Assembly (NCBI RefSeq): GCF_006345805.1 | Contig: NC_043024.1 | Span: 2,604,001 to 2,668,000 of the forward strand | DNA from: Octopus sinensis | Lineage: Eukaryota | Reading direction: 5' to 3' | DNA: 64,000 nucleotides | Shown here: piece after piece, positions 1,636 through 34,564 of the stretch | Numbering within the stretch: position 1 is the stretch's first letter | Layout: every line of letters starts with the position of its first letter | Made by a program: the position numbers and the translations under genes | Notes under the pieces: generated by a model | The model's input: the letters and a program-made list of their open reading frames with translations, nothing else | Told to the model about the DNA's origin: nothing | Databases searched by the model: none

Positions 1636-4347
1636 TCAGTGATATGGTTTTTCTCCTGTATGAATACATTTATGGTTAGTTAAGGCATTGCTCTGTGAAA
1701 ACGATTTACCACAGATATCACAGTGATATGGTTTCTCTCCCGTATGAATACGTTTGTGTTTACTCACGTCGTAACTTTGAGAAAAAGATTTACCGCAAAT
1801 GTTACAGGGATAGGGTTTCTCACCTGTATGAATGCGCTTATGAGTAATTAAATGATGATTCAGAGAGAAGGATTTACCACAGATATCACAGTGATAAGGT
1901 TTCTCTCCTGTGTGAATGTATTTGTGAGTAGTTAAGTGCTGATTATGAGAGAATGATTCTCCACAGATATCACACTGATAAGGTTTCTCTCCTGTGTGAA
2001 TGTATTTGTGTTTAGTTAGGTTTTGATTCTGAGAGAATGATTTACCACAGATATTACAGTGATAAGGTTTCTCTCCTGTGTGAATGTATTTGTGTTTAGT
2101 TAGGTTTTGATTCTGAGAGAATGATTTACCACAGATATCACAGTGATAAGGTTTCTCTCCTGTGTGAATGTATTTGTGAGTGGTTAAGTTGTGATTTCGA
2201 GAGAATGATTTACCACAGATATCACAGTGATAAGGTTTCTCTCCTGTGTGAATGTATTTGTGAGTAGTTAAGTGCTGATTATGAGAGAATGATTCTCCAC
2301 AGATATCACACTGAAAAGGTTTCTCTCCTGTGTGAATGTATTTGTGAGTAGTTAAGCTGTGATTTTGAGAGAATGATTTACCACAGATATCACAATGATA
2401 TGGTTTCTCTCCTGTATGAATGTATTTGTGAGTAGTTAAGTGGTATATCTGAGAGAATGATTTACCACAGATATCACAATGATATGGTTTCTCTCCTGTA
2501 TGAATACGTTTGTGTTTAATTAACTGACAACTTTTAGAGAATGATTTACCACAGATATCACAATGATATGGTTTCTCTCCTGTATGAATGTATTTGTGAG
2601 TAGTTAAGTGCTGATTATGAGAGAATGATTTACCACAGATATCACACTGATAAGGTTTCTCTCCTGTGTGAATGTATTTGTGAGTAGTTAAGTGCTGATT
2701 ATGAGAGAATGATTTACCACAGATATCACACTGATAAGGTTTCTCTCCTGTGTGAATGTACTTGTGAGTAATTAAGTTGTGATTTCGAGTGAATGATTTA
2801 CCACAGATATCACAGTGATAAGGTTTCTCTCCCGTGTGAATGTATTTGTGTTTAGTTAAGTGGTCATTTCTAGAGAATGATTTACCACAGATATCACAGT
2901 GATATGGTTTCTCTCCTGTATGAATACGTTTGTGAGTGGTTAGGTCGCTATTTCTAGAGAATGATTTACCACAGATATCACACTGATATGGTTTCTCTCC
3001 TGTATGAATACGTTTGTGAGTGGTTAGGTCGCTATTTCCAGAGAATGATTTACCACAGATATCACACTGATAAGGTTTCTCTCCTGTGTGAATGTATTTG
3101 TGAGTAGTTAAGTGGTGATTATGAGAGAATGATTTACCACAGATATCACAATGATATGGTTTCTCTCCTGTATGAATACGTTTGTGAGTGGTTAGGTCGC
3201 TATTTCTAGAGAATGATTTACCACAGATATCACACTGATAAGGTTTCTCTCCTGTATGAATGTATTTGTGAGTAGTTAAGTGGTGATTTCGAGAGAATGA
3301 TTTACCACAGATACCACACTGATATGGCTTCTCTCCTGTATGAATACGTTTGTGTTTAATTAACTGTCTACTTTTAGAGAATGATTTACCACAGATATCA
3401 CACTGATATTGTTTCTCTCCTGTATGAATACGTTTGTGAGTGGTTAGGTCGCTATTCCCAGAGAATGATTTACCACAGATATCACACTGATAAGGTTTCT
3501 CTCCTGTATGAATGTATTTGTGAGTAGTTAAGTGGTGATTTCGAGAGAATGATTTACCACAGATATCACACAGATATGTTTTCTCTCCTGTATGAATATG
3601 TTTGTGTTTAATTAACTGACTACTTTTAGAGAATGATTTACCACAGATATCACACTGATATGGTTTCTCTCCTGTATGAATACGTTTGTGTTCAATTAAC
3701 TGACTACTTTTAGAGAATGATTTACCACAGATATCACACTGATATGGTTTCTCTCCTGTATGAATACGTTTGTGTTTAATTAACTGACTACTTTTAGAGA
3801 ATGATTTACCACAGATATCACACAGATATGTTTTCTCTCCTGTATGAATACGTTTGTGTTCAATTAACTGACTACTTTTAGAGAATGATTTACCACAGAT
3901 ATCACACTGATATGGTTTCTCTCCTGTATGAATACGTTTGTGAGTGGTTAGGTCGCTATTTCCAGAGAATGATTTGCCACAGATATCACAATGATGTGAC
4001 TTAACCACAATGTTGATGCATTTGTGAATAGCTAAGCTATGATTCTGAGAGAATGATTTACCACAGGTGTTACAGCGATACGGCTCGACACCTGCGTGAA
4101 TGTGTTTATGTGTGGTCAAACGAACCTTTTCAGAGAATGATTTACCACAGATGTCACAGTGATAGAGATCCTCTCCTGCATGGAAACATTTGTGAATCGT
4201 CTGTTCATCTTTGAGAAAGAAGGACTTGTTGCAGACATCACAGTGAAATGAAGTTTTCTCTTCTTCTTCTGTTTCATCTTCAGTAAAATCAATCCTTAAC
4301 GACTGTGTATTACAATTAACCTCATTATCACGTAATTCATTTTCCAT
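1636..4347 (-). CDS. Poly-C2H2 zinc-finger protein, paralog 1 (903 aa, 31 finger units, short acidic N-terminus, no recognisable effector domain)
   Basis: Uninterrupted ORF of 28-aa CxxC...HxxxH units with TGEKPY linkers. The stop arises from a 2-bp deletion (TGT GAT to TGA T). Confidence 0.93.
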
Positions 4348-5891
4348 TATTTTTCTCCTCTCACCACAAAGTCCAAATGTCTTTCTTTTTTTTATATCTA
4401 TTCCCCAGTTATTTCTGTTGCTTGAAATGCTTAGTGGTATTTCGTCTGTCTTTTTGTTCTGAGTTCAAATTCCACCGAGGTCGACTTTGCCTTTCATCCT
4501 TTCAGGGTCGATAAATAAAGTACCAGTTTCACACTGGGGTAGATATAATCAACTTAATACCTTTGTCTGTCCTTGTTTGTGCCCTCTATGTTTAGCCCCC
4601 TACTGGGCAATAAAGAAATATATATTTCCATCAACTGTAATCATTGTCAATGTCTGAGGAGGCTGCCAATTCCTTTGCAATCCAGGTTTAATTAGAATAC
4701 AGGATTGGTTTTCTTGCACCCATTCCAGGCAGTGAAGTACAGAAATGCTGCTAATAATCACACACCCAAAGAAAATCTTTTACAATTCTATAATCAATTT
4801 ATATAAACAGGGTAATATTCCTTCTGTGTAGCATCTTAGTTTCAACTTAAAGAATATATTATATATATTCATGATGTGTTCGATGTAAAATCTTCCTTTA
4901 TACTAAATATCCTGTCTGATACTCTGAAATAAAAAAGAAATAATATGAGATATAGAATATACTTGAAAAGTAAAGATTAAATAATGAAAATTTTATTACG
5001 TTTTTATACTGATAAACTGGAGATATAAACCTTTAGCTGGCCAAATAAACGTTAACACGTCAGTCTGACAAACAAACAAGGAGATTATAAGGTAGTCATA
5101 GGATGTGCTAAAAATAATAGCTAAATAGAATTTGCAAGATGTTTTCTAAAAATTCCCAAAAAGTTTTGAACCAACGACGAATTTATAATTTACATCTGCT
5201 GTTTGTTTGTTGAGCGAAGCGGTCTTCGTCCCAGAGCTCGCAAGATGGAAGAAGTTGGAAACGTGGTCCTTTGCTATTCGTAAGACCTGCAGAGGAGAAA
5301 GCAGGTCATCTCCCGACACCGAAAGCATCGACGGATGGATGAATGCGCATCCAGGCTCGGCGGTTGCGTAGGAAGTCGGGGGACAAGAAACAGGAAGAAA
5401 GAGTGAGAGAAAGTTGGGGCGAAAGAGTACAACAGGGGTTGCCACCACCCTCTGCTGGAGCATCGTGGAGCTTCAGGTGTTTTCGCTCAATAAACACTCA
5501 CAACGCCCTATCCGGGAATCGAACCCGCGAGTCCGCTGCCCTAACCACTGGGCCATTGCGCCTCCACTTACATCTGTTATATATGAAATACCAGAAGTTA
5601 TAGTGTTAAAAAAAGGAAGGACTAATGTTTACTTGGAAACGGTTGATGATGATGATGATGATGATATATATATATATTTATTGCCCACAAGGGGATATAC
5701 AAAGAGGGGACAAAGAAGGACAGACATAGGGATTAAGTCGATTACATCGACCCCAGTGCATAACTGGTACTTAATGTATCGACCCTGAAAGATGAAAGGC
5801 AAAGTCGACCTCAGTGGAATTTGAACTCATAACGTAAAGACACATGCATTTCGCCCGTCATGCTAATGTTGCTGCCAGCTCGCCACCTTCA

Positions 5892-5931
<40 letters not shown>

Positions 5932-6593
5932 TAAAACGGTAAGATAACAAAAGAAAGAAAGAAAGAGACCTCAATATTATGTAAATAGAGGAAATTTATC
6001 TATAAAATAATATGTACATTTACTCAATAGTCAAGATAAAACTCTCAGTTTCAGATGCCGAAGTGGAAATCCACAACACCATCTCTTCGGTTATCTGGCC
6101 ATCTGAAAAAACGCTATGAAAAAATACCGTTATATAAAGGGAAATTACTGTATTATAATTCTGCGCGCGAAAACCCACGTGCGTACTTATACGTCACTAT
6201 GGAAACATACACATCTTCACTCGCATTTTTCGCCAAATATATACGCATATATATACAACCTCATACACACACACACACATGCGTACCGTAAAAGTTCATA
6301 CATACGTCTATATACGCACAAACACAAGAAAAAACATGGTTAAAGGTAACAGAAAAAAAAACATAAGGAAGTATACAAAGCATAAAAACCACGTTCATAT
6401 ACGGACATGCCCCTATGCACTCATACACACACACACGCCCATATATGTACATACCCGCACATATTTATACACGCATACATACACACGCATGTACAAAAAA
6501 TGAATATATATATGTCCACCCCCCCACAAAATAATGGAAAAATACTAAGTAAAAACGTCTATATATATATGTGCATTCTCATGCCCGCACACA

Positions 6594-7040
6594 TCTCTTA
6601 TTATAAAAGGCAGATTTTATCTGCCTCCCTTTGTAACTTATAGAAATCTACAATATAGGATTTCTTCAATTACAATTTACCTAGCATTTTTAAGAGTAGA
6701 ATGCATCGGGTCATGCCAGGTCCAGTTTTTTAAAATTTAAACTCCAATTAAGCAAAATTTACAGAAAACTCACATTCTGGTGTGTATGTCAAATGCTTTT
6801 CTTAATGTGGTTTACATTAGAACATAAAATTCAAATCGGACCATGTTAACACCAAAAATTATTTACATCAAAAAGATGCTTTTTTCTATGAAAATCCCTA
6901 TTTTTTACGATTTTTTCACTGCTGTGTCGCCACTTTTCGGTGTATTTCGACCAGAAAAATGTTCACAAAATTTTTACTTTTCAAAATTACAATTCCAGCG
7001 GATCGAAACATACCCGAGCAACGCCGGGCTATACTGCTAG
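6594..7040 (+). mobile_element. Non-autonomous Helitron (447 bp), specific to unit 1
   Basis: 5' TC and 3' CTAG termini, subterminal hairpin CCCG-AGCAACGC-CGGG, inserted between A and T. The site is empty in units 2 and 3. Confidence 0.85.
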
Positions 7041-7456
7041 TATATACATATATAGACATATATATGTATATACATATATATGCACATACACACACAAAAA
7101 AGTTGGCGATTACAAAGGAATTTCACAAGAATCATATATATAGTGGAAGCCGCTTATTGTGATCATTTCCGTACAGCATTGGCCAACACCTAACAGATGA
7201 CGTTAAACAAATATAAAGTCTGAACCAATTAATTTCGATAACAATAACCGGCTGATAACGTTATCCACTATTCCGATTGACCGCCACTCCATTCCTGCCC
7301 AGCCTACATCAAAACACAACAAACTACGGCATTTCTATAAATCGCAGTATTTGCTATACAACGTCTTCAATCAGATCGTATTCCTCTCCAATATATATAC
7401 ATATATATATAATAACTTACCCCTGATGCTTAATAAATAAATAAATATTTATTTAC

Positions 7457-7530
7457 TTTCGATTTCGTCTCCAAAGAATTGAGGAAACGTGACAAGCCGG
7501 AAGTAAGGTGCGTCATGTGACTTAGACTCT
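7457..7530 (-). promoter_or_regulatory. Candidate promoter and short non-coding first exon of ZNF paralog 1
   Basis: CpG-retaining block with ETS motif CCGGAAGT (7497-7504) and TGCGTCA. Minus-strand donor GAAA|GTAAAT at 7456. Conserved at 22516 and 33040. A candidate acceptor (TTTTTTATTTCAG) lies at 4924-4925. Confidence 0.4.
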
Positions 7531-8622
7531 TTAATATATGAAACCACAAAGAGTGCTGCCGACACAAAAGCGAAACTAAGAAGGAAGGGGGAACGTAATA
7601 TTGTTGTTGACTATCACCATGGTTACTGTCTAAGCGGAAGGCGCATGGCTCGGTGGTTAGCGCATCGGGCTATCAATCGCGAGTTAGTGAGTTCGATTCC
7701 CTGGATCTTTTCGTTTTGACTGGCAGATTTTTAAAATAATTTCTTTGTAACTAAACACTTTTAAACTTAAGTACCAGTTACGCACTGGGGTCGATGTAAT
7801 CAACTTAATCCCTTTGTCTGTCCTTGTCTGTTCCCTCCTATCTTTTCCGTTTGAACAGCAGTTTTTAACATAATTTCTAGGTAACTAAGCACTTTTAAAC
7901 TTCGTGTAATGGTAGAATTTGTTACATAAAATATCTTTTTTCTCTTCGCTTTCTTGAGAAAATTCTGTAGTTCGTAAGCTACAATTATTGCTGTTGATAA
8001 ACTACGGCAGATATTGTTATCACCTCAATAGACGTCATTGATTGGTTGAAATTGCCGAAATGCAAGAAATTAAACAACAAATAGCTTACAAGCTACAGAA
8101 TTTTCTCAAGGAACCCAAGAGAAAAAGATGTTTTATAAATACATTCTACCAGTATACGAAGTTTAAAGAATAAGTCCTGGGGTCGATTTGATCGACTAAA
8201 GGCGGTGCTCCAGCATGGCCACAGTCACATGACTGAAACAAGTAACAGAGTAAAGAGAGATAGCTAGATAAACAGGTAGATAGATAGGTATGTAGGTAGG
8301 CAGATAGATAAATAGACGGACAGATAGATAGATAGACACAAATAGATAGATAGATAGATAGATAGATAGACACAAATAGACAGATAGATGGATAGACAGA
8401 TAGAAGCATTTCTTTCTTCGAAAAGGACGATTCTTTTCTTCAGCTTTAAAGCTTCAGCAAAATTGCTTTGAGTGTTCATGTTGGTGGTGGTGGCCATGTT
8501 TATAGCAGTAAGGGTTGTCTTTACTTCTATGTATCTTCTAAGGCCAGACTGGCAGTTTTCTGTGTGCGTTCAAGCGGAACAACTTCCTTTTCAGACAGAT
8601 AGATAGACAAACAGAGAGATAG

Positions 8623-10320: not shown

Positions 10321-10369
10321 TAGTCCTTGCTCTTTTTAACACAATAACTTCTGGTATTTCATATACAGC

Positions 10370-10512: not shown

Positions 10513-10518
10513 TATATA

Positions 10519-13500
10519 GATAAGGTAATCGAGGTAGTCAGAGTATGTGACAGAATACTTAAGATTAGATTAGTGCTCCATCATAGGTTAGCAACTATTA
10601 TATCGGCCTATGCCCCTCAGCCAGGGCTACCCGATGGACAGAAAGACAGTTTCTATGACACCCTACTGCAGACTACCTCATTGACGAATGACAGGGACCT
10701 TCTCTTTGTGGCTGGTGACTTCAATGGGCATGTTGGACGACATGCTGGGGGCTTCCATGGCGTACATGGAGGCTACGGTTATGGTTCCCGCAACGAGGAG
10801 GGAATCAGGCTGCTGGAGTTCTGCGATGCAAATAGTCTTATGGTTTGCAACGCTAACTTCAGGAAACCGACAAGCCACCTGGTCACCTACCGATCGGGCT
10901 GGCATACTAGCCAAATCGACTACATCCTTGCCAGAATATGGGAAAGATGGCTGCTTATAAATGCCAAAACCTTCCCAGGCGAAGAATGAACCCCACAACA
11001 TAGAATGGTAGTCAGTGACTTTAGGATCAGGACTAAGAGGACGACAAGAAGACGACCAACATGGAGAAGGGTCTGGAAGTTTAAAGACCCTGCAAATGGA
11101 CAGAGATTTAGAGACATGTTACTTGAAGCCTTTGACGAAATAGAAGGGGGCATAGCTACACATGTGGTAGAAGACAACTGGACGCTTCTGAGGGACAACC
11201 TGCTGAAAGCCACTGACCAGATCTGTGGCTGGTGCAAAGTCCCCTCAAGACCCAAAATAACGTGGTGGTGGAACAATATTGTTGACAGGGCTATTAGACA
11301 AAAGAAACAGGCTTGGAAGGCCTGGAAGAACGGTGGTAGCAGGGAAGTGTATCAGACTGCCAGAAGGGAAGCTAGGAGGCAGGTGTATATAGCCAGAGGG
11401 GAAGCAGATAAGAAAAAAATTGCCAATGTTCTGCGCCGTGAGGATGAAAGACTTGAGGTATTTCATATTGCTAGACAGTGTGTGAGAGAGAATTGTGACG
11501 TGGTAGGAGAGAAATGTGTTCGCAAGGATGACGGCTCACTTGGGCTAAATGAGGATGCAAAGAGAGAGGTTTGGAGACGCCACTATGAAAGGTTGCTGAA
11601 TGAGAAAAATGAATGGGATAAAGAGTGTCTGCCGAATGTCGACCCAACAGAGGGACCAGCAATCCGAGTTGACAGTTCCTTAGTAGTTAAGGCAATTACT
11701 AGCATGAAAACAGGGAAAGCCCCAGGCCCATCAGGAATTACTGCAGAGATGCTCAAAATATCTGGTAGTGTTGGAAATAGCTTAGTCACCCGTATAGTTA
11801 ACCAGGTGATACACGAAGGAGTCATACCCAATGACTGGTGTAGCAGCATAATAGTCAACTGCTACAAAGGCAAAGGTGACGCCCTAGATACAAATAACTA
11901 CAGGGGTATCAAGCTGCTGGATCAGGTAATGAAGGTTATGGAGAGGGTTATAGCCCAACTAATTAGAGAGAGAGTTAGCTTAGATCAGATGCAGTTTGGG
12001 TTCGTGCCAGGGAAAAGTACTACTGATGCTATATTCCTGGTAAGACAGCTGCAGGAGAAATACCTAGCCAAAGATAAGCCCCTGTACCTGGCTTTTGTTG
12101 ACATGGAGAAAGCCTTCGACAGGGTCCCCCGATCCCTTATCTGGTGGTCAATGAGGAAACTAGGGATAGATGAATGGCTAGTGAGAGCTGTGCGAGCCAT
12201 GTACAGAGACGCTGCTAGTAAGGTAAGGGTTGGCAACGAGTACAGTGAAGAATTCTGGGTAGAGGTTGGGGTCCACCAAGGTTCAGTCCTCAGTCCCCTC
12301 CTATTTATCATAGTCCTCCAGGCAATAACGGAGGAATTCAAGACAGGATGCCCCTGGGAGCTCCTCTATGCTGATGTACTTGCTCTAATTGCTGAGTCAC
12401 TATCAGAACTGGAGGAGAAGTTCCAGGTGTGGAAGGAGGGTTTAGAATCGAGGGGCCTTAGAGTCAACCTAGCTAAAACCAAAGTACTAATAAGTAGGAA
12501 AGTCACAAACGCCTTCAGGTAGATGGCCCAGCTCGATCTGTAGAAAAGGTGTAGGTAGAAACTCTATAAGGTGCACCAAGTGTAAGCTATGGACACATAA
12601 GAGGTGCAGCAATGTCAAAGGAAGGCTAACTAGGAAAATAGTTTTTGTCTGTGGCAGATGCTCAGGAGCAATAAACACTGGAAATGTGCAGAGACCAACT
12701 TCTACCACGTTTCAGGGAGACAAACCAGAAGTAGTTGATAGCTTCCGCTACCTAGGTGACCAAGTCAGTAGCGGGGGTGGGTGCGCTGAAAGTGTAACTG
12801 CTAGAGTAAGAATAGCCTGGGCAAAGTTTAGAGAGCTCTTACCCCTGCTGGTGACAAAAGGCAGACTGTATGAGGCATGTGTATGTACAGCGATGCTACA
12901 TGGTAGTGAAACATGGGCCGTGACTGCTGAGGATATGCGTAAGCTCGCAACAAATGAAGCCAGTATGCTCCGATGGATGTGTAATGTCAATGTTCATAAT
13001 TGACAGAGTGTAAGTACCTTGAGAGAAAAGTTGGACCTAAGAAGCATCAGTTGTGGTGTGCAAGAGAGACGTTTGCGCTGGTATGGTCATGTGATGAGAA
13101 TGGCTGAAGATAGTTGTGTGCAAAAGTGCCACACCCTAGCGGTTGAGGGAACCTGTGGAAGAGGTAGACCCAGGAAAACCTGGGACGAGGTGATGAAGCA
13201 TGACCTTCACACTTTAGGACTCACCAAGGAAATGACTAGAGACCGAGACCTATGGAAGTATGCTGTGAGTGAGAAGACCCGGCAAGACTAGTGAGACCAT
13301 AACCCGTGGCCTCTACCTGGTATGTAGCCAGTTCACTTATACATACCTTTCCTTCTTGGGACACAAAACTCCACTTGTGAAGACCTGTTGAGGCAAGTGA
13401 AAATCAGAACCAAAATCGAAGTCGATCAACATCAATGGAAATTGCGGCTGTGATACCAGTGCTGGTGACAAGTAAGCGAACCATCCGATCGTGGCCGCTG

Positions 13501-13966
13501 CCAGCGCCGCCCCGACTGGCCTCCATGCCGGTGACACCTAAGAAGCACCATCCATTCGTGGCCGTTGCCAGCCTCGCCTGGCCCCCGTGTCGGTGGCACG
13601 TAAAAAGCACCATCCATTCGTGGCCGTTGCCAGTGCCGCCCCATCTGGCCTCCGTGCCGGTGGCACGTACAAGCACCATTTGTTCGTGTCCGTTGCCAGC
13701 CTCGCCTGACCTCCGTGCCGGTGGCACGTAAAAGCACCATCCATTCGTGGCCGTTTGCCAGCTCCGTCTGGCTCCTGTGCAGGTGGCACGTAAAAAACAC
13801 TCACTGAACTCGCAGAGTGGTTGGCGTTAGGAAGAGCATCCAGCTGTAGAAACACTGCCAGATCAGACTGGGCCTGGTGCAGCCTCCTGGCTTCCCAGAC
13901 ACCGGTCGAACCGTCCAACCCGTGATAGCACGGAAAATGGACGTTAAACGATGATCATGATGATGA
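10519..13966 (+). mobile_element. RTE-clade LINE, 5'-truncated and defective (APE C-half, RT, PHD-like insert, 3' UTR, (GAT)n tail)
   Basis: ORF pieces 10573-13291 with AGDFNGHVG, SQIDYIL, QFGFVPGKSTTD, VHQGSVLSP and YADV (YADD mutated). Internal stops at 10987 and 13001 and a frameshift near 12500. Confidence 0.93.
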
Positions 13967-14254
13967 TATATATACAAATTAAAATCCAGGAAACACAGAA
14001 GTAGCATTAATATAGTTTATTCACTGCAAAAATTCAACATGTACACTTACAGCTGTTTCGATTTTGCTCAAAAGAAATTCCAATAATTAAAACATTTAAT
14101 TGGGCAAAATCTCATCAGAGGAATGAAAAAGACATATCGTTAGGTTATCACATGTTATTCTTCCAAAACATCTCAACAGACAAAAACTTTTTTTTAATTA
14201 CTAATATTGGTATAAATCTTGGCCAGTGGGTAACAGGTTGTATAAGGGTAATAA

Positions 14255-14953
14255 TCTTTATATATATAAAACTGAGAATGTGTGTCTGTCTGTCTGTGTG
14301 TTTCCCTAAAACTTGTGAACTACAGAACCAATTTCATTAGAATTTTACACATGCCTTACTTAGGGTCCATGTAGTTTCATGGGCAAAAAAAAAAATGTTC
14401 AACTTCTTGCCTAGAGCGAGCCCATAGCAATATCATATCTTCTCCACTATTTCAGTATTACATGTTAAAAGTGAAACAAAAATATTTCTCTATTTTATGT
14501 CAGATGCTTTCACTTTAACAATAAAAATAATAATAACAATTCAATTATATGTAGTAAGTAATAATTAAAATCAAACTAAAGTATAATATAATCGTAACAT
14601 ACAAAAGTAAAAATAGCATCAATGATTTGAACTTGAATAAGTGGTTTCACATGAATGGGAATAAATTAAAAATATAATTAGCGTGCAGAAATGGAATAGT
14701 CCAGATGGATAATACAAAATTAAATTAAAGAAAAGACTATTGTCTATAAAGTATACAATGTAGAGAAAAAAGAATAGCTAACAATTCCAGTCTGTTATAT
14801 ATTTTGAGTATTGTTATCACTAGCGATATCAAGATATAACTTTATATTTTGCATTTTATGTGTAGATGTATATAGATAGATGTACATGTAATATGTACAC
14901 ATATATACATGCACTAGCACTATGACCCGGCAACGACGGGTCTTTAATGCTAG
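14255..14953 (+). mobile_element. Non-autonomous Helitron, second family
   Basis: A|TCTTTATATATATAAAA start; CCCG-GCAACGA-CGGG hairpin followed by CTAG|T. Confidence 0.75.
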
Positions 14954-15663
14954 TTGGTAAATAAATGGTAGATAGTGAGTTATATTTCTCACTATAATTA
15001 TTTTATAATGTATCGATTTAATTATTTTGTAACTTATCTATATCAGTTCAATCAATTTCTTTAACAAAGTTATAAATGTGATCACGTTGTTCTCTCATTC
15101 ATATGATACTATTTTTACTATAACTCACTAATCTAACATTTATTTAATGCGGTTTCAATTCCCAGACCGGGCGTTGTGTGTGTTTATTGAGCGAAAACAC
15201 CTAAAGGTCCACAAGGCTCCGGCAGGGGGTGGTGGCGATCCCTGCTGTACTCTTTCTTCCTGCTTCTTGAGTAATGCTGCGATGGACTGGCGTCCTGTCC
15301 AGCTGGTGGTGTAACACATATCCCACAGAAACCGGGCCCATGAGCCTGGCTAGGTTTGTAAAGGGCGCATAAATAAATAAAAATAATAAATATACTGGCA
15401 TGTAATAAAACTGTGTAAGAGAATAATTTACCACAACTCAATTGCAAGAAGCACTTCCATCAAGTTAAGCTATTTATTCGAGAGAATGATTTAATAGAGG
15501 TGCAGGAGTGGCTGTGTGGTAAGTAGCTTGCTAACCAACCAAATGGTTCCGGGTTCAGTCACACTGAGTGGCATCTTGGGCAAGTGTCTTCTGCTATAGC
15601 CCCAGGCCGACCAAAGCCTTGTGAGTGGATTTGGTAGACAGAAACTGAAAGAAGCCTGTCGTA

Positions 15664-17016
15664 AATAGATGAACATCAATGGAATTTGTATCTCTGTGGT
15701 ACCAGTGCCGGTGGCACACAAGAAAACCATCCGAACGTGGCCGTAGCCAGTACCGCATCAACTGAACTCCGTGCTGTGGGCACATAACAAACACCATCCG
15801 ATCGTGGCCGTTCGCCAGCCTCATCTGGCACCTGTCCGAAGAACCCGGCAAGACTAGTCAGGCCATAGCCCGTGGCCCCTACCTGGGACGTAGTCAGTCC
15901 ACCTGTGCATACCTTCCTTCTTATGACACTGTTGAGGCAAGTGATAATCTAATCTAATCAAATCAAATCAAAACAAATCAAAATAGATGAACATCAATGG
16001 AATTTGTATCTTTGTGGTACCAATGTCGGTGGCACACAAGAAAACCATCCGAACGTGGCGGTAGCCAGTACCACATCGACTGGCCTCCGTGCTTTGGGCA
16101 CGTAACAAACACCATCCGATCGTGGCCGTTCGCCAGCCTCATCTGGCACCTATGTTGGTGACACATAAAAACACCATCCAAAGACCCGGCAAGACTAGTC
16201 AGGCCATAGCCCGTGGCCCCTACCTGGGACGTAGTCAGTCCACCTGTGCATACCTTCCTCCTTATGACACTTGTGAAGACCTGTTGAGGCAAGTATGTGA
16301 CACTTGTGAAGACCTGTTGAGGCAGAGGCAAGTGTGTGACATTTGTGAAGACCTGTTGAGGCAAGTGTGTAATACTTGTGTAGACCTGTTGAGGCAGAGG
16401 CAAGTGTGTGACACTTGTGAAGACCTGTTGAGGCAAGTGTGTGACACTTGTGAAGACCTGTTGAGGCAAGTGTGTGACACTTGTGAAGACCTGTTGAGGC
16501 AAGTGAAGATCAAAATCAAACCAAATCAAAATAGATGAACATCAATGGAATTTGTATCTTTGTGGTACCAGTGCCGGTGGCACACAAGAAAACCATCCGA
16601 ACGTGGCCGTAGCCAGTACCGCATCGACTGGCCTCCGTGCTTTGGGCACGTAACAAACACCATCCGATCGTGGCCGTTCGCCAGCCTCATCTGGCACTTG
16701 TGTCGGTGGCACATAAAAACACCATCCGAGCGTGGCCGTCTGCCAGCCTTGACTGGCACCTGTGTCGGTGGCACATAAAAAACACCATCCGAGCGTGGCC
16801 GTTCGCCAGCCTCGTCTGGCACCTGTGTCGGTGGCACATAAAATCACCCACTACACTCTCGGAGTGGTTGGCGTTAGGAAGGGCATCCAGCTGTAGAAAC
16901 ACTGCCAGATCTGGCTGGCCTGGTGCAGCCTTCGGGCTCCCCAGACCCCAGTTGAACCGTCCAACCCATGCTAGCATGGAAAGCGGACGTTAAACGATGA
17001 TGATGATGATGATGAT
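15664..17016 (+). mobile_element. Orphan RTE 3'-UTR array (5'-truncated copy, no ORF) inserted in a SINE
   Basis: Modules match 54734-56474 and end in (GAT)n. The homologous SINE in unit 3 (27381-27780) is uninterrupted. Confidence 0.88.
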
Positions 17017-17270
17017 GTATGTATGTGCATGTGTTTGTGTCTATGTTTGTCCCGCTAGCATTGCTTGTCAATCGATGCTGGTGTGTTTACGTCCCCGTCA
17101 CTTAGTGGTTCAGCAAAAGAGACTGATAGAATAAGTACTGGGCTTACAAAGAATAAGTCCTGGGGTCGATTTGCTCAACTAAAGGCGGTGCTCCAGCATG
17201 GCCACGGTCAAATGACTGAAACAAGTAAAAGAGAGAGAGAGAGAGAGAGAGTAATAGAATTATCACAGTG

Positions 17271-19552
<2,282 letters not shown>

Positions 19553-21332
19553 TATTTTTCTCCTCTCACCACAAAGTCCAAATGTCTTTCTTTTTTTTTA
19601 TATTCTATTCCCCAGTTATTTCTGTTGCTTGAAATGCTTAGTGGTATTTCGTCTGTCTTTTTGTTCTGAGTTCAAATTCCACCGAGGTCGACTTTGCCTT
19701 TCATCCTTTCAGGGTCGATAAATAAAGTACCAGTTTCACACTGGGGTAGATATAATCAACTTAATACCTTTGTCTGTCCTTGTTTGTGCCCTCTATGTTT
19801 AGCCCCCTACTGGGCAATAAAGAAATATATATTTCCATCAAGTGTAATCATTGTCAACATCTGAGGGGGCTGCCAATTCCTTTGCAATCCAGGTTTAATT
19901 AGAATACATGATTGGTTTTCTTGCACCCATTCCAGGCAGTGAAGTACAGAAATGCTGCTAATAATCACACACCCAAAGAAAATCTTTTACAATTCTATAA
20001 TCGATTTATATAAACAGGGTTATATTTCTTCTTAGTTTCATCATAAAGAATATATCATATATATTCATGATGTGTTCGATGCAAAATGCTAAATATCCTC
20101 TCTGATACTCTGAAATAAAAAAGAAATAATATGAGATATAGAATATACTTGAAAAGTAAAGATTAAATAATGAAAATTTTATTACGTTTTTATACTGATA
20201 AACTGGAGATATAAACCTTTAGCTGGCCAAATAAACGTTAACACGTCAGTCTGACAAACAAACAAGGAGATTATAAGGTAGTCATGGGATGTGCTAAAAA
20301 TAATAGCTAAATAGCTCTTAAATCACGCAGCAATTTTAAAAATTTGGTTTTGGTTTTTGCACAATCCTATGAATTACAAATTCGCAAGAGTTTTCTAAAA
20401 ATTCCGAAAAAGTTTTGAACCAACGAAGAATTTACGATTTACATCTGCTGTTTGTTTGTTGAGCGAAGCGGTCTTCGTCCCAGAGGTCGCAAGAGGGAAG
20501 AAGCCGGAAACGTGGTCCTTTGCTATTCGTAAGACCCGCAGAAGAGAAAGCAGGTTAGCCCCCCCCCCGCCCCGACACCGAGAGCATCGACGGATGGATA
20601 AATGCTCATCCAGTTACGGCGGTTGCGTAGGAAGTCGGGGGACAAGAAACAGGAAGGAAGAGTGAGAGAAAGTTGGGGTGAAAGAGTACAACAGGGGTCG
20701 CCACCACCCTCTGCTGGAGCATCGTGGAGCTTTATGTATTTTCGCTCAATAAACACACACAACGCCCGGTCTGGGAATCGAACCCGCGTGTCCGCTGCCC
20801 TAACCACTGGGCCATTGCGCCTCCACTTACAAGTGCTGTATATGAAATACCAGAAGTTATTGTGTTAAAAAGAGCAAGGACTAATGTTTACTTTGAAACG
20901 GTTGATGATGATGATGATGATATATATATATATATATTTATTGCCCACAAGGGGATATACAAAGAGGGGACAAACAAGGACAGACATAGGGATTAAGTCA
21001 ATTACATCGAACCCAGTGCATAACTGGTACTTAATTTATCGACCCTGAAAGATGAAAGGCAAAGTCGACCTCAGTGGAATTTGAACTCATAACGTAAAGA
21101 CACATCAATTTCACCCGTCGTGCTAATGTTGCTGTCAGCTCGCCACCTTTATGTATATATATATATTTTTTATTTTATTTTATAGAAGGAGCTTCTACAG
21201 TACTAGAATTGTTTCATACAGATGAAACAGTTCTAGTCCAGTAGAAGCTCCTTCTATAAAATAAATTACTTTACTCTGCTATCTATTGAGTACCTTATTT
21301 ACTGTGGTTAACCCCGACTCAACCCGGGACCT

Positions 21333-21373
<41 letters not shown>

Positions 21374-23492
21374 TAAAACGGTAAGATAACAAAAGAAAGA
21401 AAGAGAGAAAGAGACCTCAATATTATGTAAATAGAGGAAATTTATCTATAAAATAATATGTTACATTTACTCAATAGTCAAGATAAAACTCTGAGTTTCA
21501 GATGCCGAAGGGGAAATCCACAACACCATCTCTTCGGTTATCTGGCCATCTGAAAAAACGCTATGAAAAAATACCGTTATATAAAGGGAAATTACTGTAT
21601 TATAATTCTGCGCGCGAAAACCCACGTGCGTACTTATACGTCATTATGGAAACATACACATCTTCACTCGCATTTTTCGCCAAATATATACGCATATATA
21701 TATACAACCTCATACACACACACACACATGCGTACCGTTAAAGTTCATACATACGTCTATATACGCACAAACACAAGAAAAACCATGGTTAAAGGTAACA
21801 GAAAAAAAATATAATAAGGAAGTATACAAAGCATAAAAACCACGTTCATATACGGACATGCCCCTATGCACTCATACACACACACACGCCCATATATGTA
21901 CATACCCGCACATATTTATATACGCATACATACACACGCATATACAAAAAATGAATATATATATGCCCCCGCCCCCACGAAAAAATAGAAAAATACTAAG
22001 TAAAAACGTCTATATATATATATGTGTGCATTCTCATGCCCGCACACACACATATATATACATGTATAGACATATATATGTATATACATATATAAATATA
22101 GATATGCACATACACACACACAAAAGTTGGCGATTACAAAGGAATTTCACAAGGATCATATATATAGTGGAAGCCGCTTATTGTGATCATTTCCGTACAG
22201 CAATGGCCAACACCTAACAGATGACGTTAAACAAATATAAAGTCTGAACCAATTAATTTTGATAACAATAACCGGCTGATAACGTTATCCGCTATTCCGA
22301 TTGACCGCCACTCCATTCCTGCCCACATCAATACACAACAAACAACGGCATTTCTATAAATCGCAGTATTTGCTATACAACGTCTTCAATCAGATCGTAT
22401 TCCTCTCCAATATATATACATATATATATAATAACTTACCCCTGATGCTTAATAAATAAATAAATATTTATTTACTTTCGATTTCATCTCCAAAGAATTG
22501 AGGAAACGTGACAAGCCGGAAGTAAGGTGCGCCATGTGACTTAGACTCTTTAATATATGAAACCACAAAGAGTGCTGCTGACACAAAAGCGAAACTAAGA
22601 AGGAAGGGGGAACGTAATATTGTTGTCGACTATCACCATGGTTACTGTCTAAGCGGAAGGCGCATGGCTCGGTGGTTGGCGCATCGGGCTATCAATCGCG
22701 AGTTAGTGAGTTCGATTCCCTGGATCTTTTCGTTTTGACTGGCAGGTTTTAAAATAATTTCTTTGCAACTAAACACTTTTAAACTTAAGTACCAGTTATG
22801 CACTGGGGTCGATGTAATCAACTTAATCCCTTTGTCTGTCCTTGTCTGTTCCCTCCTATCTTTTCCGTTTGAACAGCAGTTTTTAACATAATTTCTAGGT
22901 AACTAAACACTTTTAAACTTCGTGTAATGGTAGAATTTGTTACATAAAACATCTTTTTCTCTTGGCTTTCTTGAGAAAATGCTGTAGTTTGTAAGCTACA
23001 ATTATTCACCTCAATAGACGTCATTGATTGGTTGAAATTGCCGAAATGCAAGAAATTAAACAACAAATAGCTTACAAGCCACAGAATTTTCTCAAGAAAT
23101 CCAAGAGAAAAAGATGTTTTATAAACACATTCTACCAGTATACGAAGTTTAAAGAATAAGTCCTGGGATTGATTTGATCGACTAAAGGCGGTGCTCCAGC
23201 ATGGCCACAGTCACATGACTGAAACAAGTAACAGAGTAAAGAGAGATAGATAGATAAACAGGTAGATAGATAGGTATGTAGGTTGGCAGATAGATAGATA
23301 GATAAATAGAGATAGATAGGTAGACATATATAGATAAATAGACAGACAAATAGATGGATAAACGGATGGATGGATGGATAGAGAGAGACAGACAGATAGA
23401 TAGTTAGACACAAATAGATAGATAGATAGATAGATAGATAGACAAATAGATAGATAGATAGATGATAGATAGAGAGAGAGAGAGAGAGAGAC

Positions 23493-23554
<62 letters not shown>

Positions 23555-24289
23555 GCACAGATATGCTATAGAAATAAACTTTCGACGTACGCACCTTGAA
23601 GTTTTCCAGTGTTAAAACTTTCTTTGGAAGTTGCACGTCATCTTCAGCAGGTGCTTCGTGTGTGTGTGTGTGTGTGTAGGCAGAGGACGGCCGAATGGTC
23701 AAGAAGATCTCTTAACAACCATGAGGTCCCTCGTTCTGTCCTACTGAGAGACACTTTGGACAAATAACACTTTCTGCAGTGTCCAGTTGACCTGAATGAA
23801 ATCGGACAAAGGGGAAAGTGCTGAACCCAGGAATTCCAAAGAGGTCAGCTTCGGGTCGCAGAGGTTCTTGTATGATTCCAGCGGAATCCTCGAAGACTCA
23901 CGGGAATTCCGGAGCAGGGGATTCAGTTGGTCTTACACCTGAATCCTCAACGGCGAACGACGGGGATCCACGATGTATAAAAATGTCTGTATAGGTATAG
24001 ATGGAAATGGTGAGGATATTAAGAAATGGTTAATAGCAAAATGTGGGAAATAAAAAAATGGAATGGGCAGCCGAAAGGAAAACGAAACAGTGAAAGAAAT
24101 TATATAACTTTGTTTAAGTAATTTTTTATTTAGTCCTTCCTTTTTTCTGAGTTGTGCGTTAGATATGAAATTAGATATGAAATCATTCGTATCTAATTCC
24201 GGTCTCCCAATAATTATCAGTTATAAAGTGGAATTGATCAAGGAATAAAGATTTGTATGAAACTATAGCAGGAAATAAACGGAATTTGC

Positions 24290-24970
24290 AAGACTGAACG
24301 GTTAATGGACGAGGGGAAGTAACTCTTCCCTCAACAAAAGTCTTGAATATTTTTATATAGCTTCGTGTTTAAATGACAATTAATTAATTCAACAAATTAT
24401 TAGAAAGGATCACAAAAGTACAGCCCCTAAAATAACTGCAGGGGTTAATCACCGCCTCAAGAACCCAGTTTCCACAAAAACTTTTTGCTGGGAGCTGCAC
24501 AAAGCCAGATTTCAAGGGAGGGCTGCAATCAGAAAACCACTACTTTCAAAAACAAACGTTGCAAAGCGTTTAGAGTGGAGTTAAAACCTACGGAATTGGT
24601 CCCTAGAGCAGTGGAAGAATGTTATTTTCTAGGACGAGTCATCCTTTACCTTATTTCCGACAACCGGCCGAGTATACGTGTGAAGAGAGCCAAAAAAAGC
24701 ATTTGACCCAGACTGCCTTCTTCCAACTGTTAAACATGGAGGAGGATCTGTGATGATCTGGGGAGCTATATCTTGGATATCTGCCAGCCCAATAGTTCCC
24801 CTTCATGTCAGAATTAATAGTCAAGACTATTTAAGCATTTTATCTGATCAAATTCATCCTATGGTAGGGGAACTGTTTCTGGAGAGAAACGCAAGCTTTC
24901 AGGATGATAATGCACCAATTCACACGGCTAAAGTTGTCATTGAATGGCACGAGGAACATTCATCAACCGT
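24290..24970 (+). mobile_element. Tc1/mariner transposase remnant (paralog of 9640-10320)
   Basis: Same motifs, e.g. FQDDNAPIH. Confidence 0.85.
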
Positions 24971-25199
24971 TTCAAAGTAAACATTAGTCCTTGCTCTTTT
25001 TAACACAATAACTTCTGGTATTTCATATACAGCAGATCTTTCCTTCTATGTTTCCGACGAAGAGCTCCGCTCGAAACGTTAAACCCTCCATCTTTACTGA
25101 GCATCCAATAATACTATATTTGTTCCACGTCCTCGCGTTGTTGTGTTTTTTTTTGTGCTTTCTTGTTTAGATTAACTATATATATATATATATATATAT

Positions 25200-25595
25200 A
25201 TACACCAATACGTACTAATACATACTAATACATACTAATACATACACCAACCCTATACATACACACATCCAGACCCCTCCCACGCACTTTTAGCTGGTCC
25301 CTCAACCCGTTTATCAACCCTATTATCTCCCCTTATTTCGCTCTCGCGTCTCATGTTTGATCTTTGACCTCTGGCCGAAATCAGATCGCCATGTTGATTC
25401 GTTAGCTACTGCACGCATTTTTTTCTCTCCTTCTTTCTGTGTTTTTCTCTCTCTGTGTATCTTTCTGTTGAAGAGCGTAGGCTCGAAACGTTAAAGACTT
25501 GTTTTATTTATATTTCCTGAGCGCCATACTAATACAATTGTTCGTTTGTTTTCCACCTGCCTTCGTCTTTTGTTTATTTTCATAAAGCTTCCCGT
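25200..25595 (+). mobile_element. Penelope-like terminal-repeat fragment, family B
   Basis: Hammerhead-like motif at 25460-25497 inside a pyrimidine-rich repeat bounded by TA tracts. Confidence 0.5.
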
Positions 25596-25610
25596 TATAT
25601 ACATATATAT

Positions 25611-25838
25611 AACCGATCGTAGCCACTGCCAGACTCACCTGGCACCTGTGGCGGTGGAATGTAAAAAAAAAACCCTACACTCGTGGAGTGGTTGGCATTA
25701 GGAAGGGTATCAGGCTGTAGAAACACTGCCAGATCACACTGGGCCTGGTGCAGCCTCCTGGCTTCCCAGACCCCGGTCGAACCGTCCAACCCGTGATAGC
25801 ACGGAAAACGGACGTTAAACGATGATCATGATGATGAT
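25611..25838 (+). mobile_element. RTE 3' terminal fragment at the unit 2/3 junction
   Basis: Same 3' tail as 13740-13966. Confidence 0.85.
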
Positions 25839-26125
25839 ATATATACAAATTAAAATCCAGGAAACACAGAAGTAGCATTAATATAGTTTATTCACTGAAA
25901 AAATTCAACATGTACACTTACAGCTGTTTCGATTTTGCTCAAAAGAAATTCCAATAATTAAAACCTTTAATTGGGCAAAATCTCATCAGAGGAATGAAAA
26001 AGACATATCGTTAGGTTATCACATGTTATTCTTCCAAAACATCTCAACAGACAAAAACTTTTTTTTAATTACTAATATTTGTATAAATCTTGGCCAGTGG
26101 GTAACAGGTTGTATAAGGGTAATAA

Positions 26126-26832
26126 TCTTTATATATATAAAACTGAGAATGTGTGTCTGTCTGTCTGAGTGTTTCCCTAAAACTTGAGAACTACACAACC
26201 AATTTCATTCAAATTTTACACATGCCTTACTTAGGGTCCATGTAGTTTCATGGGCAAAAAAAAAATGTTCAACTTCTTGCCTAGAGGGAGCCCATAGCAA
26301 TATCTTCTTCATTGTTTCAGTATTACATGTTAAAAGTGAAACAGAAATATTTCTGTATTTTATGTCAGATGCTTTCACTTTAACAATAAAAATAATAACA
26401 ATTGAATTATATGTAGTAAGTAATAATTAAAATCAAACTAAAGTATAGTATAATCGTAACATACAAAAGTAAAAATAGCAATTGGTATAAAATTGCATCA
26501 ATGATTTGAACTTGAATAAGTGGTTTCACATGAATGGGAATAAAGTAAAAATATAATTAGCGTGCAGAAATGGAATAGTCCAGATGGATAATACAAAATT
26601 AAATTAAAGAAAAGACTATTGTCTATAAAGTATACAACGTAGAGAAAAAAGAAGAGCTAACAATTCCAGTCTGTTATATATTTTGAGTATTGTTATCACT
26701 AGCGATATCAAGATATAACTCTGTATTTTGCATTTTATGTGTAGATGTATATAGATAGATGTACATGTAATATGTACACATATATACATGCACTAGCACT
26801 ATGACCCGGCAACGACGGGTCTTTAATGCTAG
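26126..26832 (+). mobile_element. Non-autonomous Helitron, paralog of 14255-14953
   Basis: Same termini. Unit 1 retains only the 3' part (~385-604). Confidence 0.75.
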
Positions 26833-27380
26833 TTGGTAAATAAATGGTAGATAGTGAGTTATATTTCTCACTATAATTATTTTATAATATATCGATTTAA
26901 TTATTTTGTAATTTATCTATATCAGTTCAATCAATTTCTTTAACAAAGTTATAAATGTGATCACGTTGTTCTCTCATTCATATGATACTATTTTTACTAT
27001 AACTCACTAATCTAACATTTATTTAATGCGGTTTCGATTCTCAGACCGGGCGTTGTGTGTGTTTATTGAGCGAAAACACCTAAAGCTCCACGAGGCTCCG
27101 GCAGGGGGTGGTGGCGATCTCTGCTGTACTCTTTCTTCCTGTTTCTTGAGTAATGCTGTGATGGACTGGCATCCTGTCCAGCTGGTGGAGTAACACATAT
27201 CCCACAGAAACCGGGCCCATGAGCCTGGCTAGGTTTGTAAAGGGCGCATAAATAAATAAAAATAATAAATATACTGGCATTTAATAAAACTGTGTAAGAG
27301 AATAATTTACCACAACTCAATTGCAAGAAGCACTTCCATCAAGTTAAGCTATTTATTCGAGAGAATGATTTAATAGAGGT

Positions 27381-27780
27381 GCAGGAGTGGCTGTGTGGTA
27401 AGTAGCTTGCTAACCAACCACATGGTTCCGGGTTCAGTCACACTGAGTGGCATCTTGGGCAAGTGTCTTCTGCTATAGCCCCAGGCTGACCAAAGCCTTG
27501 TGAGTGGATTTGGTAGACGGAAACTGAAAGAAGCCTGTCGTATATATGTATACATATATATGTATATATGTGCATGTGTTTGTGTGTCTGTGTTTGTTCC
27601 CCTAGCATTGCTTGTCAATCGATGCTGGTGTGTTTATGTCCCCGTCACATAGTGGTTCAGCAAAATAGACCGATAGAATAAGTACTGGGCTTACAAGGAA
27701 TAAGTCCTGCGGTCGATTTGCTCAACTAAAGGCGGTGCCCCAGCATGGCCGCACTCAAATGACTGAAACAAGTAAAAGAG
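27381..27780 (+). mobile_element. SINE family S1 (GGAGTGGCTGTGTGG head, central (TA)n/(TG)n, CAGTC-AAAT-GACTG tail), full-length example
   Basis: More than 15 copies or fragments in the window, e.g. 34565-34970, 41235-41590, 42342-42705 and 46745-47153(-). Confidence 0.85.
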
Positions 27781-27813
27781 AGAGAGAGAGAGAGAGTAAT
27801 AGAATTATCAGTG

Positions 27814-29847
27814 TTATGGTTTCTTTCCTGCGTGGATATGTTTGTGAGTAGTTAAGTTACCTTTTTGAGAGAAAGATTTTTCACATACATCACAGTGATA
27901 AGGCTTCTCTCCTGTGTGAATGTGTTTGTGAGAAATTAAGGTATGGTTCTGAGAGAAGGATTTACCACAGATATCACACACGTATGGCTTCTCTCCTGTG
28001 TGAACACGTTTGTGTTTGATTAAGACATCGCTGTGTGAAAAAGACTTTCCACAGATATCACAGTGATAGGGTTTCTCACCTGTATGAATGCGCTTGTGAG
28101 TAATTAAATGATGATTCAGAGAGAATGATTTACCACAGATATCACAGTGATAAGGTTTCTCTCCTGTGTGAATGTATTTGTGAGTAATTAAATGATGATT
28201 CAGAGAGAATGATTTCCCACAGATATCACAATGATACGGTTTCTCTCCTGTGTGAATGTATTTGTGAGTAGTTAACTGGTGATTACGAGAGAATGATTGG
28301 CCACAGGTACCACACTGATATGGTTTCTCACCTGTATGAATACGTTTGTGCGTCCATAGGTTTTGATTGTGAGAGAATGATTTACCACAGATATCACAAT
28401 GATATGGTTTCTCTCCTGTATGAATACGTTTATGGTTAGTTAAGGCATAGCTCTGTGAAAACGATTTACCACAGATATCACAGTTACATGGAATTTCTCC
28501 TGTATGAATACGCATGTGTCTAGTCAATATAACATTCTGAGAGAATGATTCTCCACAGATATCACAATGATATGGTTTCTCTCCAGTGTGAATGTATTTG
28601 TGAGTATTTAAGTGGTGATTTCGAGAGAATGATTTACCACAGATAGAACACTGATAAGGTTTCTCTCCTGTGTGAATGTATTTGTGAGTATTTAAGTGGT
28701 GATTTCGAGAGAATGATTTACCACAGATAGAACACTGATAAGGTTTCTCTCCTGTGTGAATACGTTTGTGAGTGATTAGGTCACTACTTCCAGAGAATGA
28801 TTTACCACAGATATCACAATGATATGGTTTCTCTCCTGTGTGAATGTATTTGTGTTTAGTTAAGTTGCGATTTTGAGAGAATGATTTACCACAGATATCA
28901 CAATGATATGGTTTCTCTCCTGTGTGAATGTATTTGTGAGTAGTTAAGTGGTGATTCTGAGAGAATGATTCTCCACAGATATCACACTGATAAGGTTTCT
29001 CTCCTGTATGAATACGTTTGTGAGTGGTTAGGTCACTATTTCTAGAGAATGATTTACCACAGATATCACAGTTATATGGTTTTTCTCCCGTATGAATATG
29101 CATGTGTGTAGTCAACAAATCATTCTGAGAGAATGATTTACCACATATATCACAATGATAAGGTTTCTCTCCTGTGTGAATGTATTTGTGTTTAGTTAGG
29201 TTTTGATTCTGAGAGAATGATTTACCACAGATATCACAGTGATAAGGTTTCTCTCCTGTGTGAATGTATTTGTGAATAGTTAAGTGGTGATTACGAGAGA
29301 ATGATTTACCACAGATATCACACTGATATTGTTTGTCTCCTGTATGAATACGTTTGTGTGTGGTTAGGTTGCTATTTCCAGAGAATGATTTACCACAGAT
29401 ATCACAGTGATAAGGTTTCTCTCCTGTATGAATACGTTTGTGAGTGGTTAGGTCGCTATTTCTAGAGAATGATTTACCACAGATATCGCAATGATGTGAC
29501 TTAACCACAATGTGGATGCATTTGTGAATAGCTAAGCTATGATTCTGAGAGAATGATTTACCACAAGTATTACAGCGATACGGCTCGACACCTGCGTGAA
29601 TGTGTTTATGTGTGGTCAAACGAACCTTTTCAGAGAATGATTTACCACAGATGTCACAGCGATAGAGATCCTCTCCTGCAGGGAAACATTTGTGAATCGT
29701 CTGTTCGTCTTTGAGAAAGAAGGACTTGTTGCAGACATCACAGTGAAATGATGTTTTCTCTTCTTCTTCTGTTTCATCTTCAGTAAAATCAATCCTTAAC
29801 GACTGTGTATTACAATTAACATCATTATCACGTAATTCATTTTCCAT
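27814..29847 (-). CDS. Poly-C2H2 zinc-finger protein, paralog 3 (677 aa, 23 finger units)
   Basis: Complete ORF from MENELRDN to HAGKKP*. The first finger is degenerate (His to Pro). Confidence 0.93.
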
Positions 29848-34515: not shown

Positions 34516-34564
34516 GTCTTTTTCAAATGTAATTCTTGAAGAATGAAGAAGGAAATTTACATAA

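Follow-up and report, generated by a model that had tools for sequence, protein, structure and literature searches.

The window analyzed in this study, a 64,000-nucleotide stretch of the Octopus sinensis genome (NCBI RefSeq assembly GCF_006345805.1, contig NC_043024.1, positions 2,604,001 to 2,668,000 of the forward strand), contains three neighboring C2H2 zinc-finger (ZNF) genes, here named Z1, Z2 and Z3, whose ends are nearly identical and whose central finger arrays differ. The locus raises the question of how such arrays change and what their change signifies. We consider it probable, at roughly 0.7, that it represents a young group of tandem genes from a lineage-specific C2H2 poly-ZNF family of Octopus, encoded in single open reading frames (ORFs) and evolving by birth and death.

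The three genes were found to lie head to tail on the minus strand (Table 1). The short acidic leader that precedes the fingers was present in exactly three copies, and a hidden Markov model (HMM) of the finger unit gave 88 matches, all 88 of them on the minus strand and inside three arrays of 84-bp tandem repeats (1136-4182, 17261-19369 and 27809-29678). Comparison of the window with itself revealed that a segment of about 12 kb has been tandemly triplicated, with copies spaced 12-13.7 kb apart. The non-coding flanks of the three segments, termed units A, B and C, were 92-97% identical over kilobases, and the 800 nt 5' of each ATG were 95-97% identical. Thus, the three tandem paralogs with nearly identical flanks proposed by an initial annotation of this DNA were recovered. 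A truncated long interspersed nuclear element (LINE) between units A and B and a 1.35-kb insertion in unit B alone (15668-17014) were copy-specific and must therefore have arrived after the duplication. The nearest public DNA, on O. sinensis chromosome record CM016886.1 (GCA_006345805.1; locus L001), is different DNA from the window and holds at least three further family copies, named S0, S1 and S2, whose flanks were 93-98.5% identical to those of the window. The cluster exceeds three genes.

Table 1. Positions of the zinc-finger genes, duplicated segments and transposable elements in the window.
Feature	Position	Strand	Description
Z1 ORF	1636-4347	-	903 aa: 33-aa acidic leader (4249-4347) and 31 finger units
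Z1 relic tail, units 32-37	1146-1659	-	Reading frame lost through the 2-bp deletion in unit 32
Z2, pseudogene	17271-19552	-	26 units; ORF limited to 18566-19552, 328 aa
Z3, intact copy	27814-29847	-	677 aa: leader and 23 finger units
Segmental-duplication unit A	1-~10522		Z1 and flanks; from self-comparison; extends past the left window edge
Segmental-duplication unit B	13745-25188		Z2 and flanks; from self-comparison; holds the 1.35-kb insertion
Segmental-duplication unit C	25616-33469		Z3 and flanks; from self-comparison; homology to A and B stops at 33469
Truncated LINE between units A and B	10753-13615	+	Reverse transcriptase (RT) ORF at 11005-12522
SINE-like element, ~410 bp	27368-27780		~35 nt downstream of the Z3 stop codon
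SINE-like element, ~196 bp	4430-4625		~85 nt upstream of the ATG; copies at 19637-19832 and 29931-30316

All three genes encode an N-terminus that begins with MENELRDN[E/D] (26 further residues not shown), and the ancestral gene end reads HAGKKP followed by the stop codon. The near identity previously noted for the leader and the first three fingers extends through finger 4 (96-100% DNA identity among copies). The fingers have the form C-x2-C-x12-H-x3-H with TGEKP-type linkers, and Z3 matched Pfam zf-C2H2 (E = 3.8e-114) and zf-H2C2_2 (E = 7.7e-181), which places these genes among the C2H2 poly-zinc-finger genes. Scanned against Pfam, Z3 and the N-terminal 146 aa yielded finger families only, with no match to KRAB (PF01352), SCAN, BTB, ZAD or SET, in agreement with the earlier description of an octopus C2H2 array that lacks KRAB.

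Analysis of the arrays revealed gain and loss of units. With unit boundaries set by nhmmer parse, Z1 contained 37 of the 84-bp units, Z2 26 and Z3 23, and nearest-unit matches between arrays were not colinear, with non-monotonic best matches at, for example, Z2.5-Z1.19, Z2.6-Z1.15, Z2.14-Z1.28 and Z2.16-Z1.23 (gene followed by unit number); the initial annotation was thus right that the central arrays differ in both number and order. Near-identical pairs within a gene (0-1 differences) included the adjacent identical units Z3.13 and Z3.14 and S1.20 and S1.21, the identical units Z2.13 and Z2.16, three units apart, and the identical units Z1.5 and Z1.7, which belong to a duplicated KSSQ block of 2 units and are spaced two units apart. 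Adjacent units differing by one base were Z1.19 and Z1.20, and Z1.26 and Z1.27. The S2 array showed a higher-order period of 252 bp. In the comparison of Z3 with S1, units were 96-100% identical across the first nine units of Z3, where S1 had six extra units: Z3 units 5-9 matched S1 units 8, 9 and 13-15 at 96-99%, and the 3' halves of the two arrays differed. Such visible gain and loss, including identical adjacent units, agrees with the minisatellite-like turnover claimed before.

To describe what is being shuffled, we examined the 62 intact central units of the window, or 110 units when those of the other O. sinensis copies were added. Amino-acid entropy was highest at helix positions -1, +2 and +3 (2.5-2.7 bits), followed by +6 and position x7, the H/Q before the first Cys (1.6 bits each), by +5 and the variable position of HK[R/Y]IH (about 1.4 bits) and by +1 (1.0 bits), with the remaining framework codons at 0.8 or below; the Cys and His ligands did not vary in any of the 62 window units. 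Variation is therefore concentrated in the recognition helix, as had been proposed. At the DNA level the framework was near-invariant, and the helices fell into a few cassettes, each with linked synonymous markers: xNS[D/N] (Leu CTA, Thr ACC), KSxQ (AGT AGT CAG), xN[H/Q]x (TTA ACT), QNQN (CAG..CAA AAC CTA) and LNHH (CAT CAT). Two framework haplotypes with their own synonymous codons, also reported earlier, were evident: HKRIH, with CGT and a final His encoded by CAT, and HKYIH, with TAC and a final CAC (Fisher p for this linkage = 6e-9 among window units and 8e-15 once the O. sinensis copies were added). Helix type predicted the framework haplotype almost perfectly, the R framework being found with xNS[DNV] in 25 of 25 units and with KSxQ in 7 of 8, and the Y framework with xN[HQRD]x in 52 of 59. 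LNHH was the sole helix carried by both frameworks.

Linkage of the R/Y codon was stronger with the Pro codon of the following unit (odds ratio (OR) 14.7, p = 6e-8) than with the one in the same unit (OR 6.5), and position x7 was linked to neither. Thus, the haplotype block spans the helix through the linker, and it appears to be broken, by exchange or mutation, in the near-invariant stretch encoding the beta-hairpin just 5' of position -1. Variants at -1 within one helix type differed by single bases (GGA/AGA/GAA/GTA; CAA/CGA/CAT) and are therefore mostly point mutations rather than swaps. In this respect the suggestion that several helices are mosaics swapped around -1 was for the most part not borne out.

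Selection was assessed by the ratio of non-synonymous to synonymous substitution rates (dN/dS, or omega) in disjoint nearest-neighbor pairs of units from different genes, with an identity of at least 90% in every pair. All-against-all Nei-Gojobori counts were set aside, since the synonymous proportion (pS) exceeded 1 at some codons and old cassette types were mixed. First, the contact codons, which make up 12 of the 84 bases (14%), contained 39% of base differences in the window (p = 1e-7) and 32% when O. sinensis copies were included (p = 9e-9). Second, with a pooled synonymous rate, contact dN/dS was 1.59 in the window (95% bootstrap 0.66-3.09), 1.15 with O. sinensis (bootstrap 0.76-1.67) and 0.80 in the four long-ORF genes only, whereas the framework values were 0.26, 0.28 and 0.20, respectively. 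Third, the ratio of non-synonymous to synonymous changes was higher at contacts than in the framework (OR 4.4, p = 0.011 in the window; OR 3.1, p = 0.004 with O. sinensis), and single-site omega was highest at -1 (1.8-2.4) and +3 (1.1-2.0). Fourth, when units were paired by framework only, synonymous divergence in the contact codons was also high (0.34 vs 0.07); thus, the helices are older lineages residing in similar frameworks, not fresh mutations. Finally, pairwise omega over N-terminal codons 1-118 was 0.15-0.5 in 9 of 10 comparisons and 0.93 in the tenth, with 1-5 differences per class. Taken together, these data fit contact positions that evolve at a neutral-like rate, varying freely within a constrained scaffold.

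These results bear directly on the most serious alternative, an arms race in which positive selection drives the contact residues to follow young transposable elements (TEs), including those near the cluster. The excess of non-synonymous change at contacts and the single-site peaks would be expected under such a scenario; the LINE and the 1.35-kb insertion are indeed younger than the duplication, and TE consensus sequences have been reported to be enriched for predicted octopus ZNF motifs (PMC10547256). However, the intervals of contact omega span 1 and the value falls below 1 in the long-ORF genes, the high synonymous divergence of contact codons marks older cassettes, and the window is repeat-dense throughout, so that proximity to a TE says nothing about targeting. 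We therefore regard an arms race as improbable. It follows that the "rapidly diversifying DNA-recognition cassette" of the initial annotation stood in one part, as change is concentrated at the contacts, and not in the other, as omega was not significantly above 1. A lack of excess non-synonymous change at contact positions, named there as grounds for refutation, was not what the data showed. Part of the diversification is decay, and much of the helix diversity is the re-use of older cassettes. Contact-site variation thus seems to have been over-read as rapid adaptive change.

The decay is seen in the fates of the individual copies. Of the window copies, Z3 alone stays open as far as the ancestral stop (27814-27816). 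In Z1, a 2-bp deletion falls in the codon for the first Cys of unit 32 and leads to a stop at 1636-1638; the same unit has two additional nonsense codons, the ancestral stop (after AGKKP, at 1146-1148) lies in the out-of-frame tail, and finger 3 lacks its last His (HKCIN). Z2 contains a 1-bp deletion in unit 11 (about 18568), where its ORF ends, a 5-bp insertion in unit 15 (about 18225-18232), a TGT>TGA change in a zinc-ligand codon at 18088-18090 (unit 17), the 2-bp deletion shared with Z1 at about 17764 (unit 21) and, in the next unit (22), a shared 6-bp deletion; its ancestral stop is at 17271-17273. The 2-bp deletion of Z1 and Z2 is also present in S0 and S2, and is therefore real, predates these duplications and is no assembly error. 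The truncation of Z1 and the death of Z2 had been missed in a description that was otherwise mostly correct: the last three fingers, described as nearly identical among the genes, are so as DNA (90-100%), and not as protein, since they are out of frame in Z1 and Z2, and those of Z1 lie at about 1163-1415, beyond position 1636 where the cluster had been taken to begin.

Could the whole family then be non-functional debris, that is, dead duplicates drifting neutrally in which long ORFs were left by chance? Disabling lesions in two of the three window copies and in S0 and S2, a contact omega of about 1, and the short and odd public gene models of the family would all be compatible with this idea. 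On the other hand, certainly non-coding sequence contained about 1.9 lesions per kb, at which rate about 5 would be expected in the 2.7-kb ORF of Z1 and about 4 in the 2.0-kb ORF of Z3, and none was observed in either (P = 0.006 and P = 0.02, respectively). For this reason Z1 and Z3 look maintained, and Z2 looks dead. The constrained framework, the N-terminal omega of 0.15-0.5 in most pairs and the invariant zinc ligands likewise argue against debris. In the out-of-frame tails of Z1 and Z2 differences were nearly all non-synonymous (6.5 vs 0.5), as dead sequence should show. We consider this explanation even less probable than an arms race. The last alternative, in which mis-assembly of the near-identical 84-bp repeats would account for the different lengths and unit orders of the arrays, appears very unlikely: units 90-100% identical in arrays of 2-3 kb are hard for assemblers, but reading frames are kept across 23-31 consecutive units, the 2-bp deletion and strings of units (Z3 5-9 vs S1) are shared with copies in L001, and copy-specific insertions distinguish the flanks.

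The explanation we favor is therefore birth-and-death evolution of a young tandem cluster. A segment of about 12 kb with one gene would have been duplicated head to tail, giving at least three copies in the window and at least three more elsewhere in O. sinensis. The arrays would act as coding minisatellites, each 84-bp unit representing one finger and its linker, in which one unit, or a block of 2-3 at a time, is gained by duplication or lost, presumably by unequal exchange or replication slippage. They appear to draw on the small set of cassettes described above, each linked to one framework haplotype, with substitutions at contact positions accumulating near the neutral rate, purifying selection apparently acting on the zinc-binding and structural framework, and the leader and first fingers showing a weaker trend toward constraint on very few differences. 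The copies would have met different fates: Z3 intact, Z1 deprived of its last six fingers by the old 2-bp deletion with its 903-aa ORF kept, and Z2 decaying. The products would be sequence-specific DNA binders with long arrays, the leader would be the only candidate segment for partner recruitment, and, by analogy with other ZNF families, repeats or transposons are plausible targets.

Several points weigh against this explanation. First, there was no sign of array-specific homogenization since the duplication, because framework identity was no higher within a gene (0.907) than between genes (0.905-0.907). The unit repertoire thus appears to be older than the gene duplications or to have been exchanged among paralogs, and part of the reshuffling could predate the duplication or reflect such exchange. 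Second, array lengths in repeats of this kind are prone to mis-assembly. Third, the repeat-unit pairs behind the dN/dS values are not true orthologs. Finally, a contact omega near 1 is also expected of a decaying family.

The leader points to a wider family. In Z1-Z3 a stop codon precedes the first in-frame ATG, and only 33 aa come before finger 1. The leader has the consensus MENELCEN.VKC..QS..IDF.D...KE..KTSYH (33-35 aa), and many Octopus ZNF proteins start with ME[N/D/S]ELCE..VKC..QS..IDF.D...KE..KTSYHCDIC. An HMM search with the leader profile, as the initial annotation had recommended, gave 21 matches at E <1e-3 in an exhaustive search of 1.84 billion representatives, that is, at least 21 protein clusters. 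Every named match was from O. bimaculoides, O. sinensis or O. vulgaris; many chromosomes were represented among the matches. The leader occupied residues 1-35 in nearly all of them; a few had a short N-terminal extension, and in one (P0064) it was internal (residues 103-135), probably reflecting a merged model of two tandem genes. Leader and finger 1 were contiguous in one ORF in Z1-Z3, S1, S2 and both genes of a further, unrelated O. sinensis locus (L002, CM016888.1); we propose to group such genes as leader-ZNFs. The latter represents a diverged member of the family, with a single 1017-aa ORF containing the leader and a long finger array, and a second leader-ZNF ORF 5.9 kb upstream. The leaders of the window and L002 subfamilies were only about 45% identical, and about 45 nt just 5' of the ATG were conserved between them (window 4348-4395; L002 9955-10000), which may represent a 5' untranslated region or start context. 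Histone-fold genes (H2A-like, H2B/H3-like and CENP-T/TAF-like; L002 20326-25389) adjoin this leader-ZNF pair in O. sinensis.

Public protein sets under-call the leader-ZNF family. Reference models of 91 and 172 aa correspond to ORFs of 779 aa (L001 10001-12340) and 1017 aa (L002 10001-13054), respectively. No exact protein records for the three window ORFs were found by look-up, and a search with the full-length Z3 protein was dominated by long vertebrate ZNFs and returned no near-identical annotated protein; such a lack of full-length relatives is probably due to the shortness of the reference gene models. An AlphaFold2 model of the leader and fingers 1-2, based on a 19-sequence alignment, had a mean predicted local distance difference test (pLDDT) score of 52.6, with residues 1-30 below 50, and the leader is therefore probably a disordered acidic segment with no fold. 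Hence, the effector-less or unknown acidic N-terminus proposed earlier was correct in that no known effector domain was found, and incomplete in that this N-terminus is not unique, being common to many Octopus ZNF genes. In the literature searched, we found no description of the octopus leader or the unit-cassette structure, and PMC12513265 does not contain the term "N-terminal".

How does this cluster compare with known systems? Lineage-specific expansions of C2H2 ZNF genes in octopus and coleoids were reportedly described by Albertin and co-workers in 2015. The window cluster shows no essential difference from these KRAB-less poly-ZNF tandem clusters on particular octopus chromosomes and provides one example at base resolution; its tandem nature is evident from three copies in the window, three in L001 and two in L002. 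Octopus C2H2 clusters and expansions are thus known (PMC9795677, PMC12513265), and the present cluster is one more case, with minisatellite-like turnover of units. Tetrapod KRAB-ZNF clusters are similar in having tandem genes, 84-bp units in one exon, change at contact residues, birth-and-death evolution and many pseudogenes, whereas the octopus genes lack KRAB and have leader and fingers in one ORF. To our knowledge, no KAP1-type partner has been described for the octopus family. PRDM9 also resembles it in its 84-bp coding minisatellite, near-invariant framework, variable positions -1, 3 and 6, and unit gain and loss; in contrast, the octopus family is multi-copy, lacks PR/SET, KRAB and SSXRD, and has a contact omega of 0.8-1.6 with intervals spanning 1.

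The closest parallel for the leader comes from cyprinid fish, whose FiNZ-ZNFs carry a Glu-rich sequence of 28 aa (FiNZ) at the N-terminus; for these, TE repression and positive selection are experimentally supported (PMC10547256). Both are short, Glu-rich N-termini (28 aa in FiNZ, 33-35 aa in octopus) without similarity to known domains, and both head a large, lineage-restricted and tandemly expanding ZNF family. No sequence relation was detected, however, the named matches of the octopus profile being all Octopus and no fish. We tentatively suggest, as a possibility that remains somewhat doubtful, that the leader is an Octopus-restricted, ZNF-associated effector or recruitment motif analogous to KRAB or FiNZ, acting as a disordered short linear motif and marking a large single-exon poly-ZNF subfamily that is systematically truncated in public annotations.

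The rest of the window is also rich in repeats. The LINE between units A and B was about 91% identical to a copy at 52164-55050. The latter belongs to a nearly full-length LINE (52164-56416) with ORFs at 52173-53012 (weak endonuclease match) and 53006-54733 (RVT_1 and a PHD-like finger) and, behind them, a tail made up of 33-63-bp tandem repeats. A short interspersed nuclear element (SINE)-like sequence of about 410 bp was found after each ZNF stop codon, with pieces at 839-1130 in copy A and at 15489-15667 and 17015-17245 in copy B, where it is split by the 1.35-kb insertion. More than 15 full or partial copies of this element were present in the window (including 34555-34969, 41710-42072 and 46752-47162), and it was also found in the unrelated O. 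sinensis loci L002 and L003 (84-96% identity). A second SINE-like element, of about 196 bp, was tandemly doubled in copy C only (29931-30316). Rfam and ARAGORN gave no matches in the window, and a tRNA origin of the SINE-like elements was thus not supported. An interstitial, degenerate (GTTAGG)n array of 825 bp, a rotation of the TTAGGG telomere repeat, was located at 39156-39980. Finally, an ORF at 58475-59434 contained a 21-bp minisatellite (PSPKTPV-like, 58624-59140) running in frame into an aldo/keto-reductase-like piece (about 59249-59383, Pfam E = 3.8e-8), and is probably an exon of a neighboring gene beside a coding-looking repeat.

In itself the cluster adds little, as both tandem C2H2 expansions in octopus and the idea that they track repeats have already been published. 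What it provides is a base-level picture of array change, in which a few cassettes on two haplotypes are shuffled by gain and loss of units and about half of the copies are broken. It also offers a caution, namely that high variability of contact residues alone is no evidence of an arms race. Beyond the cluster, the leader marks a wide Octopus ZNF subfamily; if it truly recruits a partner, whether silencing or activating, cephalopod ZNF biology would gain a handle like the one that KRAB provides for mammals.

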